Sequence record: NC_061449.1
Direction: 5' to 3' (one strand)
Length of the DNA stretch: 64,000 nucleotides
Made by a program: the position numbers and the translations under genes. Shown here piece after piece: positions 2,094-62,412 of this stretch (position 1 is its first letter; every line of letters begins with the position of its first letter). Under the pieces are notes generated by a model, which did not search any database, was not told where the DNA came from, and was given only the letters and a program-made list of their open reading frames with translations.

Positions 2094-5000
2094 ATGGCAA
2101 AAACGAACAACAAGGCTGAGAAAAAAGCTGAGAAGAAAGCTAAAGTCAAAGCCTCTAAGTCGAAGGACAAAGCAGTCGCCTCTGATGATATCGGTGGCGT
2201 TGAAGTATTAGGCTTTGACCTCGGCAGCATGATGGATGACGTGCTCGACGGCATCGAAAAGAAAACGAAAGTAAGTTCTGCCGATGCAGCACGACACGCA
2301 CCTCGCATCTCTACTGGTGTGCTCGCGCTTGATATGTACCTTGACGGCGGTATCGTACCTGGCGGTTGGTACACGTTCAGCGGCGGTGAGCAGTCGTGTA
2401 AGTCAACCATGACCATGAGTATCATGGCGAGTCTGATTCGTCTGAAATACTCTGGCATTAGCGTAGTGTTCGACTACGAAGGTTCGACAGATGCTGAATA
2501 CGTTGCTGGTCAGCTCAAAACGTTCGGTGTTAAAGTCGATCCGAAAACAATCTTCGGTGTGCGTGACGAAGACGGCTCGTGGATTATCAAGCCTAAGATT
2601 CGTTACTATGCACCAGACAATGGTGAGCGCTTCTTCGATTATATGTCGATGCTGCGTCGTCGTCTGCCTGACAAGATCGTAGAGAAAGACGGCTCTGCGT
2701 ATTACCTCTTTGAGAACAACAAAGAGAACGCGAAGAAGCTGGCTGGTAAGTACGACAAGAAGTGGTTCAGTCGTAACAACCAATTCAAAGTTCCTGCTGC
2801 TGATGGCCACATGCAAGCGGCTGTTATCGTTGACTCCTATCCGGCAATGCTGCCTGATCAGGTAGATGACGATGACGGTTCAAAAGCAATGGCACTGCAA
2901 GCGCGTATGTTCTCTGACGGCATCAAACGTTTCCGTGGTGGTATGCGTCGTAAGATGATGACCATCGTTGGCGTTAACCAGTTGCGTCAGAAGCCTGCTG
3001 TAATGTTCGGCTGTTTACATGGAAAGACGCTGGTACCATTCGTTGACGGTCGTGTTCTCCGCATGAAAGATATTGTGGATAATAAGATTGAAGGTGAAGT
3101 GTGGTCATACAACGAAGATAATCGTCAGATTGAACCGCGTCGCATTACTGCATGGCACCACAACGGCAACGTTGAAGATCAGTCGCATTGGATGCGCATT
3201 ATCACCCAATGCCCTGAAACTGCTAACGGACAGGCTTCCGTCACGGTGACTCCTAACCATGAAATTCTGACTGACCGTGGTTGGAAACGTGCTGACGAGA
3301 TCACAATGACTGACCGAGTTGTGTCGAAGTACACGTCAGTGCGTACTGGCTCCCTTGCTAAGTTCCTGAATGCTGTCGCTGTAGGCGATAGCTCGATGGT
3401 TGCGGATAGCCCGAACAGCGGCCTGTTGAAATTCCAGGATAACAACAACCCGGACTACGTTCTGTGGAAGATTGGTAAACTGGAAAATCACTTCGAGTTT
3501 GAATCCTATTCAGCTTCGCATGGCGGCGAGTGCTACATTGCTCGTGGTAGCGACTTTGTTGCTTACTCAAAGCAGGTGCCTGAGCGTGAGCCGTGGAAAG
3601 TTAAGTTTGATGACCTGTCGTTTGCTGTGTTCTACATGGACGACGGTACTCTGAAAACTGATCGCAAGAACGCCCTGTTTAGCATCAAGCGCTTTAAAGG
3701 CGATACTGCCGCCCTTGATTCGATTCATGCGATGTTTGCCGAACATGGCTTTGCGGTTAACTACAATCCTGACGACGGCTGTTTCTGGATGAACTTGAAT
3801 GAAAGTGATAGCTTCTTCCAGCGCATTCGTAAGTACGTGCCTGACTGTATGCAGTACAAACTGCCTGCTGAACATCAGGGCTTCTACGAAGAATTTGAAC
3901 TCGAAGGTCAAGAGCATGTGCGTCCAGTTTACGTACCTGTGATCGGCATCGAGCCTGGTTCTAAGAAAGCATTCCAGATGAAGGGCAAGTACGATATTAC
4001 TGTTGATAACAACCACAACTACATGGTTGGCAATTCGGCGAACGGAATCATCGTCCATAATAGTCCCGAATATGAGCCGGGCGGTGATGCGTTGAAGTTC
4101 TACTGCTTCGACCGCGACACTCTGATTCGTACTGACCACGGCGTGTTGACTGCACCGCAGATCAAAGAGCTGATGGAAGCTGGTACCGAAGTTCGTGTTG
4201 AATCGTTCGACGGTTATCAGAAGATTCAGGGTGCGTGGAAAGTTGATGACGCTCCGTTCCCAATCGAAATGAATGCTGGTGGTCACACATACATCGGCAG
4301 CGCAGAGCACCGTCAGTTCACGTTCATGTATGACTGGACAGCAGAAGGTATGATGGTTCTGCGTCCTGAGTGGAACACACTCGACCAGCTTGCTAAGTGG
4401 CCTGATAAGAAGGGTCAGTATGCAGGTCTGCGTGTACCGCCAGTGAAAGAACTGAAACAGAACGTGCCTGATGCGTTCGACGAAGCGAGCCAGCTTGTTC
4501 GTAATCTTCTCGGTAACTGCGATCCGGTTAGTGTGCAACTGCCTCTGGTGACTGACGGCGATACTACCTACGCTGCAAACGTGCTGACCATTGATATGGT
4601 TGGCGAAAGCACTGACGTGTCTGACTTCTCGTTCTGGGCTAAGAAGCTGCTGGATATCGGTGTGTACGCATACGCTGACGAAAGCGGTCTGCACATGCCT
4701 GGCCTGAACAAGTACGAGCTGACGCAAGCCGTAGAGCAATACGCTGAGGGTGAGTTTGTGGGTCTGTCGTTTGAGGCCACCAGCCGTCAACGTCAAACGC
4801 AGATGCTGACTGTTATCGCTGATGTGTTCCCTGAACTGACTCGCTATGTTCTGGACTATCAGTTGCAGACAGGTGATGATAAAATCTATCTTGCACCTGA
4901 GCAGGACTTCGCACAGGCTCTCGACCTGATTCTGCATAAGCAGATTGAAGGCTACGATGACATGTACGACCTGCTGATGACTCAGCTTGCCTACGTTGAA

Positions 5001-57561: not shown

Positions 57562-57801
57562 ATGTTTACGAAAGAGAACCTCTCTGACGGTACGCAAGTT
57601 CGCTTTCTCGATCTGGCTCCGTACGAACAACGTCCGATGACTGCTGCTGGGCGTGAACAACACACTACTCTAATGTGCCGTGTGCGTGAGCGCTGTAAAG
57701 ATGTTGTCGTACCAGCTATGTGTGAAGGGCAGCGTGTTCAATTGCGTATGCAGCGCACCACTCTTGATAAGATTAACGCGATTGCCAAAGGGGAACAGTA
57801 A
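57562..57801 (+). CDS. 79-aa hypothetical protein between the topoisomerase subunits
   Basis: GGAGGA RBS; TAATG coupling to the next gene. Confidence 0.65.
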   Translation: MFTKENLSDGTQVRFLDLAPYEQRPMTAAGREQHTTLMCRVRERCKDVVVPAMCEGQRVQLRMQRTTLDKINAIAKGEQ

Positions 57802-59450
57802 TGGCAGTTAAGCCGAAGAAAGTTAAAGTCGTTAAGAAAGCGACTGCGGTAGCGAAGCCTGCAAAGGTTAAGTTGAAGTCGAAAGCTGTTGCTGTCGATG
57901 ACATGCCGAAGAAGAAAAAGAAGAAAGGCGAAGTAGCGGAAACGAGTACAAGCACTTCGCTGTACCCGATGATTGGTCAAGACGAGTCGCTCATTCGTGA
58001 CGAGAACCTCGCTGATTACACACGACGCGCTCTCTTCCAGTACGGTTCATACGTTGTTGAAGACCGTGCTATCGCTGACTATCGTGACGGCCTCAAGCCT
58101 GTGCACCGTGCGTTACTCTGGTCGCTGTCTGACTTGGGGTTACGCCCAGGTGGTGCGTTCAAGAAAGCTGCACGTACTGTTGGTGATGCGTTAGGTAAGT
58201 ATCACCCACACGGTGATGCTGCTTGTTATGGTGCTATGGTGACGATTGCGAACACAGTGCCGCCTGCTGTAGCGGGTCAAGGCAACTGGGGTGACCCGGT
58301 AGCACCTGCCGCTGCGATGCGTTATACCGAAGCGAAAATGAGTAAGTTCGCGGGTAGCTTCTTGCTTGACCCTGACTATCTCGAAGTAACGCCGATGGTA
58401 GACAACTTCTCGAACGATATGAAGTTGCCACTGTATCTGCCTGCACTTCTGCCGTACATGCTGTTCAACGGTAGTGTGCCTGCACCAGCGTATGGGGTGA
58501 AGTGCGGTAACCCGTCATTTAGCTTCACGTCCGTTGCAAAAGTCGTGTGCGATATGCTCAATGGCAAAGAGTATAGCGCGAAGAAGCTCGCTGATACGCT
58601 CAAAGTCAATCATGAGTATGGCTGTCTCGACGTAAGCTCTGATGAAGACTTCCTCGCGCTTATGTCTACGGGGCGTGGCAAAGTCACATACGAACCGCAG
58701 ATGAAGATCGACGAGAAGACGAAGACGATCACGATTCAAACGTATGTGCCGGGCGGTATGTCGAACAACGCAACCATCACCAAGAAGCTGGAGAAGATTG
58801 CAGAGTGGCCTGGCGTCGTGTCTGCATCAAACGCCAGTTCGAAGAAGAACAAAGACGCAGGCCCGTGGGGCGCAGCGTTTGCGATCAAGTGTCGTGGTAG
58901 CGAAGACCAGTTATACGAACTCGCAACCAAAGTGCAGCGTGAAGTTACCTCAGCGATTAACTACTCACTGGGTGTGACTGTCCGACGTGCTGATGCCTCG
59001 AACAAGTTCATGTACCTGTCGTATGTGAACTACTTCAAAGCGTGGGTTGCGTATCGCATTAAGCTGGAAGTTGCGATGCTCAAAAACAAGATGGCCAAAG
59101 CAGAGAAAGCCTTACATCTGCAAGAGGTTTACTTGTGGGCAGTGGACAACATGGACAAGCTGCTTAAAGCTCTGCCTAAAGCGCTGGTGGCCAGTGACCC
59201 TGACGCAACTCTTGCGAAGCTGTGCAAGATTCCTGTTGACGACGCGAAGATCATTCTCGACCGTCAAGTGCGTAAGCTCGCTAAACTTGAACGTGCTGGA
59301 CTTGTCGCCAAGATTAAAGAAATCAAGGCCGAAATTGCAGAGTATAAAGCTGGTCTGAAAGAGCCTGGAAAATATGCCGCAAATGGCACTGCTGCAAAAG
59401 TTAAGGCTTATCTCAAATCACCGGATGATAAACTTCCTGTAGGTCTTTGA
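57801..59450 (+). CDS. Type IIA DNA topoisomerase, GyrA/ParC-like subunit lacking the C-terminal beta-pinwheel
   Basis: DGLKPVHR, KAARTVGDALGKYHPHGD, AAMRYTEA (catalytic Tyr); only 549 aa. Confidence 0.95.
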   Translation: MAVKPKKVKVVKKATAVAKPAKVKLKSKAVAVDDMPKKKKKKGEVAETSTSTSLYPMIGQDESLIRDENLADYTRRALFQYGSYVVEDRAIADYRDGLKPVHRALLWSLSDLGLRPGGAFKKAARTVGDALGKYHPHGDAACYGAMVTIANTVPPAVAGQGNWGDPVAPAAAMRYTEAKMSKFAGSFLLDPDYLEVTPMVDNFSNDMKLPLYLPALLPYMLFNGSVPAPAYGVKCGNPSFSFTSVAKVVCDMLNGKEYSAKKLADTLKVNHEYGCLDVSSDEDFLALMSTGRGKVTYEPQMKIDEKTKTITIQTYVPGGMSNNATITKKLEKIAEWPGVVSASNASSKKNKDAGPWGAAFAIKCRGSEDQLYELATKVQREVTSAINYSLGVTVRRADASNKFMYLSYVNYFKAWVAYRIKLEVAMLKNKMAKAEKALHLQEVYLWAVDNMDKLLKALPKALVASDPDATLAKLCKIPVDDAKIILDRQVRKLAKLERAGLVAKIKEIKAEIAEYKAGLKEPGKYAANGTAAKVKAYLKSPDDKLPVGL

Positions 59451-59471
59451 TAAATCTGTAAATACAAGTCA

Positions 59472-59523
59472 GCACATTCTTGGACGAAATGCGGTTGTAG
59501 TTGAGAGCAGATTATGTTATAAT
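59472..59523 (+). promoter_or_regulatory. Early-type promoter family copy 11
   Basis: GCA-CATTCT-TGGACGAAAT ... TATGT-TATAAT; WCTGTAAATA just upstream at 59454. Confidence 0.8.
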
Positions 59524-59529
59524 GATCTA

Positions 59530-59790
59530 GATGGGTAGCTAGTATTGGGAGATACTAGCTACTCGAAACATAACAGGAGGGTAGCGTAGCTGTATCACAG
59601 CAACTTGGAAACTCAAGGGTAAAATAAACCGAGCCTAAACGGCCAACTCTGGCGAGGCATTCTCTGGGAGAGCCCCTCGACCTATACTATAATCGACCCA
59701 CAGAATACTAATATGCTAATGCAACATTGGTATTCGAAGTGTCGCTAGGACCAGCATCAACGGTCCTCAACTCTTAATGAAGTTTGGAAA
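59530..59790 (+). ncRNA. Candidate ~260-nt highly structured RNA
   Basis: Own promoter, no ORF; 13-bp hairpin 59533-59564, stems 59651-59682, 59703-59735, 59747-59767. Confidence 0.5.
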
Positions 59791-59797
59791 TCCATAG

Positions 59798-61072
59798 ATG
59801 AAAAATCAGGTAAGCAACCTTAAAGCTGGTTTAGAGCAAGTCATCGTCAAACTGACTACGCTCCGTTCGGGTATCAATCTCAAACGCCAGCACGTTGTTG
59901 ATTCATTAGGTCAGCCCTCATCTGTTTTAGCTGACTTGACCAAGGCATTAAAGAGTAATACCTATAAGTCTTACCCCGATGTACTGCAATTGCGTGATTC
60001 TGTCCGCGCAACTTGCACCACCTGCCTAAGCCTGTCAGAACAAGTGGTTGCCCGACGCATCAAGCCACGAGATCTGATGGAAAAGCTCGGTGAAATTGTG
60101 AAGTCGTTCGAGGCTGACGTATCGTTAGCTCAATCGTGCTTGGGTTACCTGCCTGAGTCGCGCAAAAATGTTTCTCTCGATGATATCCCTGAGGGTGTTG
60201 AGGGTAAAGCTCGTCTTGAGGCTGCCCAAAACATCGACCGTGAGATGTACGAGCAAGAAGCAAACGACAAAGCTGTACGACGTGAGCAACGCGAAGACGC
60301 AGCGACTGCGAAAACTAGTCGTGTGCTCAAGCGACTCAAAGACGCGTATAGCCACAAGGTACCGAGAACGTTCAAACACTCTATTCAGATAGTTCAACTT
60401 CCTGTGATGGCTCGATTCGGTACGCTCGCCATGAGTCCTGAATCGTTATCTCGCATGGGCTTCAAAATCGAAACCGCCGGACTGCATTCAACCCCCAGCT
60501 CCGACCTTGGTATCATTTTTGAAAACCAGCTTCTGTTGTTCTTCCGCATGTCAGACGCGAAGGGCGTAGCAGAAGAAGCCGTGAAAGATCACAAGATGCT
60601 TGATGGAACCCTCGTCGAACGCAAACGCCTCCAGAAAGAACGCAACACAGAACGCCGTGACCTCAAGAAGCTCAATCAGCTTTTGGAGGAAGCAAAGTCG
60701 CTGAAAGCTCGTCGTGCGCTGCGCGAACAAATCGCAGACACCGAGGCAACAATCAACGACATTACAGCGAAGCTGGATGCAATGGAAAGCAAGGTTCGTC
60801 TGAGCAATTCCAAAGAGCGCGTGTATCGTCAGATGAAAACATCGAACGATCATGCGATGCTCGACTATCTCAACCCCATTGTCGATATGCTCAACGAGAA
60901 AAGCAGCAGCACTCTCGGTCTGTTCACCACGATGCCGTTACGTGGCGTGATGAAAGACAGCGATGTGCATTGTGCTTGGCTTATGGAGAAATCAGCTATC
61001 AACCTCTTGCTGCGCCATACAGGTGGCGACGTGAAGTTGCAGAACTGGTTCCTTCCGTGGACTAATGGCTAA
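59798..61072 (+). CDS. Coiled-coil hypothetical protein
   Basis: 424 aa; charged heptad segments. Confidence 0.75.
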   Translation: MKNQVSNLKAGLEQVIVKLTTLRSGINLKRQHVVDSLGQPSSVLADLTKALKSNTYKSYPDVLQLRDSVRATCTTCLSLSEQVVARRIKPRDLMEKLGEIVKSFEADVSLAQSCLGYLPESRKNVSLDDIPEGVEGKARLEAAQNIDREMYEQEANDKAVRREQREDAATAKTSRVLKRLKDAYSHKVPRTFKHSIQIVQLPVMARFGTLAMSPESLSRMGFKIETAGLHSTPSSDLGIIFENQLLLFFRMSDAKGVAEEAVKDHKMLDGTLVERKRLQKERNTERRDLKKLNQLLEEAKSLKARRALREQIADTEATINDITAKLDAMESKVRLSNSKERVYRQMKTSNDHAMLDYLNPIVDMLNEKSSSTLGLFTTMPLRGVMKDSDVHCAWLMEKSAINLLLRHTGGDVKLQNWFLPWTNG

Positions 61073-61607
61073 CAACGAAAACCGATTACCGGCGGCGACG
61101 AAAGGTGATTTGACACAGTGCATCATCTGCGGTAAGTTTAGCAGAGCGATTCACTATCACCATACCGTACCCCGCTCACTGGGAGGCGAGCTTTCGCTTC
61201 AAATCCCAATAGACGGTGACTGCCACACAACGCTTCACGCAAAAGCAGAAGCTGTGGTAGCGAAGTTAGCAGGAAACCGCAAGCAACCGCTCGGTACGTT
61301 TTGGGATGACCCCGAAGCCGAAGAGCGAGCACAAACATGGCTAAGCATTCTGGTAGATGCGATGCTCAACCCACCGGTACAGCCTGGACAGAAAGAAGTG
61401 CTGTTGCCGATGATTAAGGTTGACATGGAAACCAGACATGCACTCGAACTCTTGAAGCGTGATACGCCTGGCATTACTAATATGAGCCAAGTGTTACGCC
61501 TCTGCATTGAGACAACATTAAAGACAAAGGGGTTAAAAAATGGCGAATCAAAAAGTACGCACTCTGGACATCAAAGCACTCGTAAAAAGCGAACTGACCT
61601 GTGGTGA
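61065..61607 (+). CDS. HNH endonuclease-like domain fused to a C-terminal RHH-like segment
   Basis: CIICG...HYHHTVPRSLGG...DGDCHTTLH; IKVDMETRHALELLK...NMSQVLRLCI. Confidence 0.7.
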   Translation: MANNENRLPAATKGDLTQCIICGKFSRAIHYHHTVPRSLGGELSLQIPIDGDCHTTLHAKAEAVVAKLAGNRKQPLGTFWDDPEAEERAQTWLSILVDAMLNPPVQPGQKEVLLPMIKVDMETRHALELLKRDTPGITNMSQVLRLCIETTLKTKGLKNGESKSTHSGHQSTRKKRTDLW

Positions 61608-62412
61608 CTGCCGCGGTCTGACGCGTGATGCTCTGTTGCCGACTGCCGAAAAACCGTGTGCAACACAAGGTCAGTTAGCTGATTCTAAGATCTGCAAACA
61701 CTATCGCTCTGACAGCCAATCGCTGACCGAGCTGATGACCGAACACGGTGATACGCTGGTTGCTCTGTTCAATACGTTCCGTAAGATGTCGGATAAAGAC
61801 CTGCGCGTTGTTGCTGGTATGCTGTTATCTGAATCTAAAACACGTCGTCATGGCGTTAAGATGGGACAAGCTGTATTTGTACGTTATCGTGGTCGTGAGA
61901 CTCGCAACTACATGAATAACTTCATGGCAGCGCGTGTTCTCGACGTAGACGCAGATTCGATTCGCCTTATTTCCGAGAAAGGCGATATTGTTCTGACGTA
62001 TGCGAACACCGGCTTTAATGGTCCTTCCGTATATACGAAGAAGCAGTTCGCTAAGTTACGCACAGAGATGATCAAAGCTGGTAAGTTGATCGACCCTGAG
62101 CAAGAGATCAAAACCGCTAAACGTAATCTTCCACAAGAAGACAACGTTAACTTCTCCGCACCAAGTTCACTCGATGGCTTCGCTATTCCTCTGATGGAAG
62201 ATGTGACGAAAGGCCGTGGTGGTAAGCGTAAGGGTAAGAAGACTCAGACGCTGGTGGACATTGTGTCTATGATCGAGAACGGTCACGACATGGGTGCAGA
62301 GCAAGACGAGTCTGGTGTAATGAGTCTCGGCGGTAACTCATACAAGTCGAAAGATAAGAAGAAGAAACTCCGTGTCGGTAAGAACGGCGTTGTCGAACTC
62401 GGCGACCTGTAA
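61540..62412 (+). CDS. Hypothetical protein with N-terminal Cys cluster and Lys-rich tail
   Basis: CGDC...C...C; 290 aa. Confidence 0.75.
   Translation: MANQKVRTLDIKALVKSELTCGDCRGLTRDALLPTAEKPCATQGQLADSKICKHYRSDSQSLTELMTEHGDTLVALFNTFRKMSDKDLRVVAGMLLSESKTRRHGVKMGQAVFVRYRGRETRNYMNNFMAARVLDVDADSIRLISEKGDIVLTYANTGFNGPSVYTKKQFAKLRTEMIKAGKLIDPEQEIKTAKRNLPQEDNVNFSAPSSLDGFAIPLMEDVTKGRGGKRKGKKTQTLVDIVSMIENGHDMGAEQDESGVMSLGGNSYKSKDKKKKLRVGKNGVVELGDL

Follow-up and report, generated by a model that had tools for sequence, protein, structure and literature searches.

What is encoded by an unusually long gene-free stretch within the replication gene block of a jumbo phage? Here, we address this question for a 347-nt gap in Erwinia phage pEa_SNUABM_17 (NC_061449, Alexandravirus, 263.9 kb). 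The DNA analyzed, hereafter the window, is the final 64 kb of this genome, and all coordinates refer to it unless stated otherwise. This analysis was motivated by a sequence-only reading, in which the gap was suggested to give rise to a promoter-driven RNA with multiple hairpins and two alternatives were considered, i.e., an undescribed noncoding RNA or a complex regulatory leader for the gene starting at 59798.

The gap carries a phage promoter motif and lies ahead of gp326

On its 5' side, the gap is flanked by a topoisomerase II A-subunit-like gene (57801-59450; Pfam DNA_topoisoIV) and on its 3' side by gp326 (59798-61072, plus strand), which encodes a protein of 424 aa of the PHROG family phrog_34809 and is the gene that we propose is served by the leader. 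The setting is a replication gene block with topoisomerase genes upstream and a gene for a DnaB-type helicase downstream. Consistent with its initial description as one of the longest noncoding gaps, it exceeds every other distance between annotated genes within the 50 kb examined, the runners-up being 266 and 256 nt. No gene is annotated in the gap in the records of related phages, and no ORF is conserved on either strand of the element among the 22 orthologues compared, in agreement with the claim that the RNA lacks an ORF.

A phage promoter, recognized by motif match, spans 59482-59523 on the plus strand. It comprises an upstream element (GGACGAAAT, 59482-59490) common to seven other promoters of the genome, a −35-like TTGTAG (59495-59500) and, after a 17-nt spacer, an extended −10 (TGTTATAAT, 59515-59523), in which TGnTAYAAT is kept in every orthologue; over the promoter region, 40% of the positions are invariant across orthologues. 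The class to which this promoter belongs has an upstream GGACRAAAT element ~26 nt before an extended −10 TGnTAYAaT together with a weak −35, and its eight strict copies are all on the plus strand at 210-260 kb of the genome (window 11043-59523; genome 210960-259439). As a motif class, the promoter named in the sequence-only reading is real. The transcription start is predicted near 59530-59531, and the predicted RNA behind the promoter is ~268 nt long and ORF free. Each of the eight promoter copies is followed by a hairpin with which the predicted transcript opens. The leaders from the other intergenic promoters of this class are 40-65 nt, and the gp326 leader is four to six times longer.

We found no terminator-like site on the plus strand between the RNA and gp326 (59530-59800). 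There is no intrinsic terminator behind the last of the covarying hairpins (P7; see below), which is followed by CAACTCTTAATG and not by a U tract, and none was found after the topoisomerase gene. Directly behind the stop codon of the latter, a CTGTAAATA motif (59456-59464, plus strand) may be a second promoter, of the late type, from which this leader and gp326 could also be transcribed. There are six copies of the motif in the window (0.34 expected) and 28 genome-wide (264 kb); they share the strand of the genes around them and mostly lie 20-50 nt upstream of start codons with good SD sequences. The copy behind the topoisomerase gene is kept in all relatives, the most distant included. The late promoter of T4 is TATAAATA, and by likeness to it CTGTAAATA looks like the promoter that this clade of phages uses for late (or middle) genes. 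Two further candidates were rejected. A putative second promoter inside the leader (TATAAT at 59687-59692) reads TATTAAT in several phages and has no −35, and pairing between the promoter spacer and the start codon region in a read-through RNA is possible in pEa_SNUABM_17 and SNU35 and is absent in relatives with other spacers.

The plus strand fold is maintained by compensatory changes

The plus strand folds with a predicted energy of −84.7 kcal/mol (z = −4.2 relative to 200 dinucleotide shuffles; z = −2.7 for the minus strand), and the fold is kept across ~25 related phages. Six hairpins on the plus strand (P1, P3, P4, P5, P6, and P7) are kept by compensatory change. For the 5' half, we seeded a covariance model on two sequences (P1, P3, and P4) and aligned 19 orthologues. 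In this alignment, which was fitted to the model so that the numbers are flattered, 96.5% of the cells are paired versus 28-47% with partners slid, both partners have changed in 21 of the 29 pairs, and covariation scores 0.619 versus 0.178 ± 0.018 in shuffles, with 0 of 500 shuffles reaching this value. Single-sequence folds of each orthologue gave the same hairpins out of quite different sequences. For the 3' half (P5 to P8), based on a plain MAFFT alignment of 22 sequences, 92.5% of the cells are paired versus 30-43% with partners slid, seven pairs have changed on both sides, and the score is attained by 0 of 500 shuffles. G-U pairs account for ~8% of the cells and would be A-C mismatches on the opposite strand, arguing that selection acts on the plus strand RNA and not on DNA or an antisense RNA. 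We conclude that the structure is under selection as plus strand RNA.

In the 5' half (59531-59682), 7% of the positions are invariant, which is no better than in the flanking genes at their third codon positions (13-14%); the stems are nonetheless kept. The 3' half (59683-59797) is 56% invariant, which is comparable to coding sequence and 4-fold higher than at synonymous sites. In the two halves together, 28 pairs have changed on both sides, and the covariation is far above chance. The most conserved 30-nt block in 1.5 kb, synonymous sites included, is the first 30 nt of gp326; 24 of these 30 bases are invariant among 19 phages, and the conserved block runs 35 nt into the gene. Because the first 12 codons of gp326 (59798-59835) are almost invariant at synonymous sites, an RNA-level constraint reaches into the coding region.

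A 5'-terminal hairpin, a start-less AGGAGG, and variable hairpins in the 5' half

P1 (59533-59545 paired with 59552-59564, plus strand) is a 13-bp hairpin with the loop TGGGAG and occupies the 5' terminus of the predicted transcript, precisely as read from the single sequence. It begins 2-3 nt from the predicted 5' end, as do the hairpins behind the sister promoters. All 22 orthologues have a hairpin of 12-17 bp at this position with highly varied stem sequences, and the loop sequence is conserved. All 13 modelled pairs have changed on both sides, with 95-100% of the cells paired, and, together with flanking pairs, the helix reaches ~20 bp in several relatives.

P1 is followed by an A-rich linker (59565-59588, plus strand), which is predicted to be single stranded and carries a perfect SD-like AGGAGG at 59575-59580, ~45 nt from the predicted 5' end and 217 nt upstream of the gp326 start. 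As noted earlier, this AGGAGG serves no start codon: there is no ATG, GTG, or TTG within 15 nt downstream. GGAGG is conserved at this site in 22 of 22 sequences, and the Yoloswag-like phages have AAGGAG. The predicted pairing of the AGGAGG with the 3' end of 16S rRNA is −10.8 kcal/mol compared with a median of −6.2 kcal/mol for 77 real genes.

The middle of the element is variable. In pEa_SNUABM_17, the plus strand segment at 59589-59617 forms two small hairpins, GCTGT/ACAGC (59589-59601) and CTTGG/TCAAG (59604-59617). Neither is conserved among relatives; the GCTG/CAGC hairpin of the sequence-only reading is therefore present but lineage specific. P3 (GCC/GGC, 59633-59643, plus strand) is a small hairpin behind a conserved AAAATAAAC tract. 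It occurs in the variants GCCU/AGGC, GCUU/AAGC, GCCC/GGGC, and GUCAC/GUGAC, with two of four pairs changed on both sides and 94.7% of the cells paired. P4 (59651-59682, plus strand) is a long, irregular hairpin with an outer GGCGAGG/CCTCG.CC and an inner TTCTC/GAGAG stem, and corresponds to the previously described GGCGAGG stem with an inner CTCT/AGAG. At least eight unrelated sequences fold as a hairpin at the P4 position; six of 12 pairs have changed on both sides, and 94.9% of the cells are paired.

A conserved 3' domain extends to the gp326 start codon

P5 (CGAC at 59693-59696 paired with GTCG at 59741-59744, plus strand) encloses an invariant internal loop and P6 (59693-59744 in all). It is paired in 100% of the cells, and a C-G pair is replaced by U-A in one phage of the Yoloswag type and by U-G in three other phages. 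P6 (GAATACTAAT/ATTGGTATTC, 59703-59712 paired with 59726-59735, plus strand) is the 10-bp stem of the sequence-only reading, and four of its pairs have changed on both sides. P7 (AGGACC/GGTCCT, 59747-59767, plus strand), which had likewise been picked out, is preceded by an invariant TCGCTAGG; 97.7% of the cells are paired, an A-U pair is changed to G-C in five sequences, and there are many G-U wobbles, which are tolerable only in a plus strand RNA. Between P7 and the start codon lies an invariant tract (59768-59797, plus strand) with a possible P8 (AACT/AGTT, 59769-59772 paired with 59781-59784), which is 96% paired and never covaries, a mini-hairpin (TGG/CCA, 59785-59794) over a weak ribosome-binding site, and an A/U-rich stretch. 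The predicted pairing of the gp326 ribosome-binding site is −3.3 kcal/mol, placing it among the 11 weakest of the 77 genes.

Several other features in or near this domain were tried and rejected. The alternative to P5 suggested by RNAalifold (ATACT/AGTGT plus TCGA/TCGA) cannot form in the Yoloswag-like phages, where P5 covaries. A small ORF from a conserved ATG at 59714, inside P6, has no SD ahead and its frame is not kept: it has 10-11 codons in some phages, is ATG-TAG in Y3 and SNU13, and has 28-29 codons in the phB78 group following a 2-nt insertion. A long-range helix between the linker behind P1 and GTTTGG near the ribosome-binding site is, in most phages, no better than with shuffled linkers. 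Finally, a helix between AGGAG and CTCTT behind P7 is formable in both clades and cannot covary because both sides are invariant.

The element is restricted to phages and linked to gp326

BLASTN matches to the gap came from 46 phage records, with identities between 100% and ~70%. The carriers are Alexandravirus phages on Erwinia and Dickeya, Sasquatchvirus Y3, and the unclassified SNUABM_13 group. Every copy of the element is directly upstream of a gp326 homologue, and none was found away from gp326; within the genome, the element is single copy, with no further copies or regulon. Scans of viral and metagenome sequences added four variants, and a scan of bacterial genomes gave one phage contig and one chance match. 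This contig (L073; JAVWLC010000009.1, 20.6 kb, labelled Raoultibacter sp. MAG and binned as an actinobacterial MAG) has a complete Alexandravirus-like promoter, leader, and gp326 start at 2850-3240 and is almost certainly mis-binned. With a looser pattern of the Yoloswag type, 27 of the 29 matches in the viral scan were by chance.

In Yoloswag-like phages, whose gp326 is ~50% identical, the leader is ~190 nt and retains TCGAY ... RTCGCTAGGG ... CCCTC, i.e., P5, P6, and P7, with compensatory changes; a reduced P5 to P8 core is kept across genera. In phages with a gp326 that is ~40% identical, the leader measures ~50 nt; it includes a P7-like hairpin and a second hairpin that covers the SD. These shorter leaders in ever more distant relatives indicate that the element grew stepwise ahead of gp326 and stayed linked to this gene. 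In the literature on this phage group, we found no mention of an RNA element or of a transcriptome, and public runs labelled as RNA contained assembled contigs of related phages only, spread over genes and gap alike.

The element matches no known RNA class

None of the 4,227 models of Rfam 15, which include 6S RNA, RNase P, tmRNA, group I/II introns, riboswitches, and CsrB/RsmB, matched the window at the gathering threshold. The best sub-threshold match in 59400-59900 was Bacteroidales-1 (18.3 bits versus 60 needed; E = 0.75), and no known riboswitch class matched even at an E value of 10. Similarly, ARAGORN identified no tRNA or tmRNA in the window. An Rfam comparison, which the sequence-only reading had called for, was thus made both at gathering and at E ≤ 10 and gave no family; the absence of hallmarks of tmRNA, RNase P, 6S RNA, and group I/II introns noted there is upheld.

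Several specific mechanisms were also considered. As for a CsrA/RsmA sponge of the CsrB/RsmB type, there are six GGA motifs in 267 nt versus 4.4 ± 1.8 in shuffles (p = 0.27), with four to seven per orthologue; the protein sponge proposed earlier has no positive support in this form. A group I intron was rejected because the flanking genes are complete, with their own stop and start, in all relatives and no intron model matches, and a leader peptide or upstream-ORF attenuator because no short ORF with a ribosome-binding site is kept in frame. RegB is a nuclease that cuts GGAG, and RegA is a repressor. T4-type control of early mRNAs by these two proteins was rejected because neither gene is in the phage (no match to PF10715 or PF01818 in the genome at E ≤ 1). 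A CsrA homologue is absent as well.

Three features of a structured cis-regulatory 5' leader are present: the element extends from a promoter to a start codon on the same strand with no terminator between, it shows compensatory change, and it is constantly linked to gp326. At the sequence level, the AGGAGG also has the properties of a STAB-SD, i.e., it is SD-like, close to the 5' end, complementary to the anti-SD, start-less, and conserved. We conclude that the element belongs to a known kind of RNA but constitutes a new family within it, one that is in no RNA database.

The predicted fold of gp326

gp326 is 80-99% identical among close relatives. It has no significant Pfam domain (DUF4349 is sub-threshold with 17.8 bits versus 27.7 needed), phrog_34809 has no function on record, and there was no match in the PDB by sequence and no usable match in the Atlas. 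In the AlphaFold model (pLDDT 84), the N-terminus is a four-helix bundle, and there are long coiled helices together with a beta domain of small size. The fold matches were generic helical bundles only and, among viral proteins, uncharacterized proteins only, in the jumbo phages PaBG, Motura, and phiRSL1. Based on these structural relatives, gp326 may be a widespread jumbo-phage replication-block protein. None of the tests (Pfam, PDB sequence, and fold comparison) supported that gp326 is an SSB.

A model for the function of the gp326 leader

Altogether, we suggest that the gap probably encodes a cis-acting structured 5' leader (~268 nt) of the gp326 mRNA. Of the two initial alternatives, the complex regulatory leader for 59798 fits best, given that there is no terminator, that the conserved block abuts the start codon, and that distant relatives keep a leader; the free-standing noncoding RNA fits less well, and the proposal of a ribosome decoy has no positive support for a free-standing RNA and survives only in the form of the start-less AGGAGG within the leader. 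We speculate that P1, at the extreme 5' end, would shield the mRNA from 5'-end-dependent decay in the style of the ompA leader, and that the start-less AGGAGG in the single-stranded linker would dock the 30S subunit and act as a stabilizer, like the STAB-SD of cry3A; a role as a standby site is equally conceivable. The invariant P5 to P7 domain, together with the tract over the ribosome-binding site, would be an operator that sets the translation rate of gp326. Such an operator would work most simply by binding a protein, and the simplest guess would be autogenous control by gp326, as for T4 gp32; P5 to P7 look like an operator for which a protein effector is likelier than a ligand. The fast-evolving middle hairpins may be structural spacers that would also keep Rho and RNases off the long untranslated stretch. 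Some points count against this leader model. Processing of a leader can also yield a stable RNA that acts separately; the long-range pairings from the linker and AGGAGG to the region of the ribosome-binding site are unsupported, one being no better than shuffles and the other joining invariant tracts; and STAB-SDs are described for Gram-positive bacteria with RNase J1, which is lacking in enterobacteria.

The leader resembles several known systems in part. The T4 gene 32 leader is long, structured, and untranslated, with a 5' structural element and an operator beside the start site, and governs translation and mRNA life. Similarly, the gp326 leader is long, structured, and ahead of a phage replication-block gene; however, there is no sequence or fold likeness, no pseudoknot is shown in the gp326 leader, and gp326 is no SSB. 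The ompA-type stabilizer hairpin is matched by P1, which, like all hairpins behind promoters of this class in the window, lies within 2-3 nt of the predicted 5' end; 5'-terminal base pairing hinders RNase E, according to references listed in PMC3997798. However, P1 is one of approximately nine elements and, therefore, an ompA-type hairpin cannot explain the conserved 3' domain. In the long leader of Bacillus thuringiensis cry3A mRNA, the STAB-SD lies close to the 5' end; it is SD-like and can pair with 16S rRNA but does not initiate translation (PMC4113751). The AGGAGG of pEa_SNUABM_17 is likewise start-less and near the predicted 5' end; however, the STAB-SD blocks the 5'-3' exonuclease RNase J1, whereas protection in Erwinia would have to counter RNase E. 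The leader of T7 gene 10 has, ahead of the SD, an A/U-rich element that stimulates initiation (PMC8748333). By eye, the A/U-rich stretch at 59768-59784 and its counterparts in Yoloswag-like phages resemble this 9-nt enhancer (epsilon), with the difference that the tract in pEa_SNUABM_17 has one inserted base and that the T7 leader is 45 nt and unstructured. Finally, covarying stems with invariant junction nucleotides right before the ribosome-binding site are shared with ribosomal-protein and thrS-type leaders and with riboswitches, from which the gp326 leader differs in having no Rfam match at all.

Other explanations for the element have to be weighed against this model. It is unlikely that the RNA is a free-standing, trans-acting small RNA (a sponge, decoy, or anti-defense RNA) that is freed by processing or noncanonical termination before gp326. 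A strong promoter of its own, the 5' hairpin, the dense structure without an ORF, and the conserved P1 loop would suit such an RNA, and the perfect start-less AGGAGG could trap 30S subunits; however, there is no terminator-like site at which it could end, its best-conserved part extends into the start codon and first codons of gp326, it is single copy and never apart from this gene, the lack of GGA enrichment sets it apart from CsrB/RsmB, and it belongs to no Rfam family. A new riboswitch class, in which the invariant P5 to P7 core would sense a small molecule and not a protein and thereby switch gp326 translation, is very unlikely. The core consists of two plain hairpins without a multi-stem junction or conserved pseudoknot, it is restricted to one narrow phage clade and one gene, no alternative expression-platform fold is supported, and it resembles no known class at the most permissive E value used. 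This is so even though the core lies immediately ahead of the ribosome-binding site, has its invariant nucleotides clustered in junctions and in an internal loop flanked by covarying stems, and is kept where gp326 is only ~50% identical.

Early intercistronic sites of T7 are a precedent for RNAs cut by RNases. By analogy, RNase III or RNase E could cleave read-through RNA from the topoisomerase genes or the CTGTAAATA promoter within or close to P1, so that separate stable messages result, the element being a processing and insulation module between cistrons. The missing terminator behind the topoisomerase gene, the second candidate promoter upstream, and the ~20 bp of P1 plus flanking pairs in several relatives argue in this direction; nevertheless, P1 alone is with 12-17 bp short for RNase III, a 5' hairpin behind every promoter of the class makes P1 look like a general 5'-end feature, and the invariant 3' domain is left unexplained, and we find this explanation hard to sustain. 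It is highly improbable that the RNA primes DNA synthesis from an R-loop as a replication-origin transcript, in the manner of T4 oriF/oriG or ColE1 RNA II: the setting of a promoter and a long, untranslated, structured RNA inside a replication gene block speaks for it, but the turning points of the cumulative GC skew lie at genome positions of ~55 kb and ~193 kb and not at 259 kb, the element is single copy, and conservation peaks at the gp326 translation start. The G-U wobbles, which indicate selection on a folded RNA, are neutral in this respect. Hardly credible at all is that the element has no function of its own and consists of spacer hairpins conserved merely through the close kinship of the phages. 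A single genus does supply most of the orthologues, and in sequence the 5' half is conserved no more than synonymous sites are; however, pairing is maintained through the changes on both sides, the 3' half is far more invariant than synonymous sites, and different genera share the core.

In phages, very few RNAs are known to be structured regulators, and almost none in jumbo phages, whose control of gene expression is for the most part uncharted. An alignment is at hand, the covariation is strong, and the target gene is clear, so that the element offers a direct handle on how a jumbo phage tunes a replication-block gene and on the role of gp326. If the start-less AGGAGG docks ribosomes or stabilizes mRNA in an enterobacterial host, a mechanism so far documented for Gram-positive bacteria would be extended. 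More tentatively, and with considerable doubt, we consider that the P5 to P7 core and the start-less AGGAGG together might be a new phage translational switch, in which the core, bound by a factor (from phage or host, protein or metabolite), would hand parked ribosomes to the weak gp326 start 217 nt away, or in which the RNA would be cut loose as a stable regulator.

Genes downstream of gp326

Two genes downstream of gp326 deserve comment. The product of gp328 (61540-62412, 290 aa) is annotated as "DNA topoisomerase" but has no Pfam domain and no sequence match in the PDB, and this annotation looks unsupported. The product of gp327 (61065-61607, 180 aa) has a weak match to HNH nucleases (19 bits, slightly below the Pfam cut-off). 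Because gp327 is missing from some distant relatives (L045 and L046), it may be a mobile insertion within the replication block.
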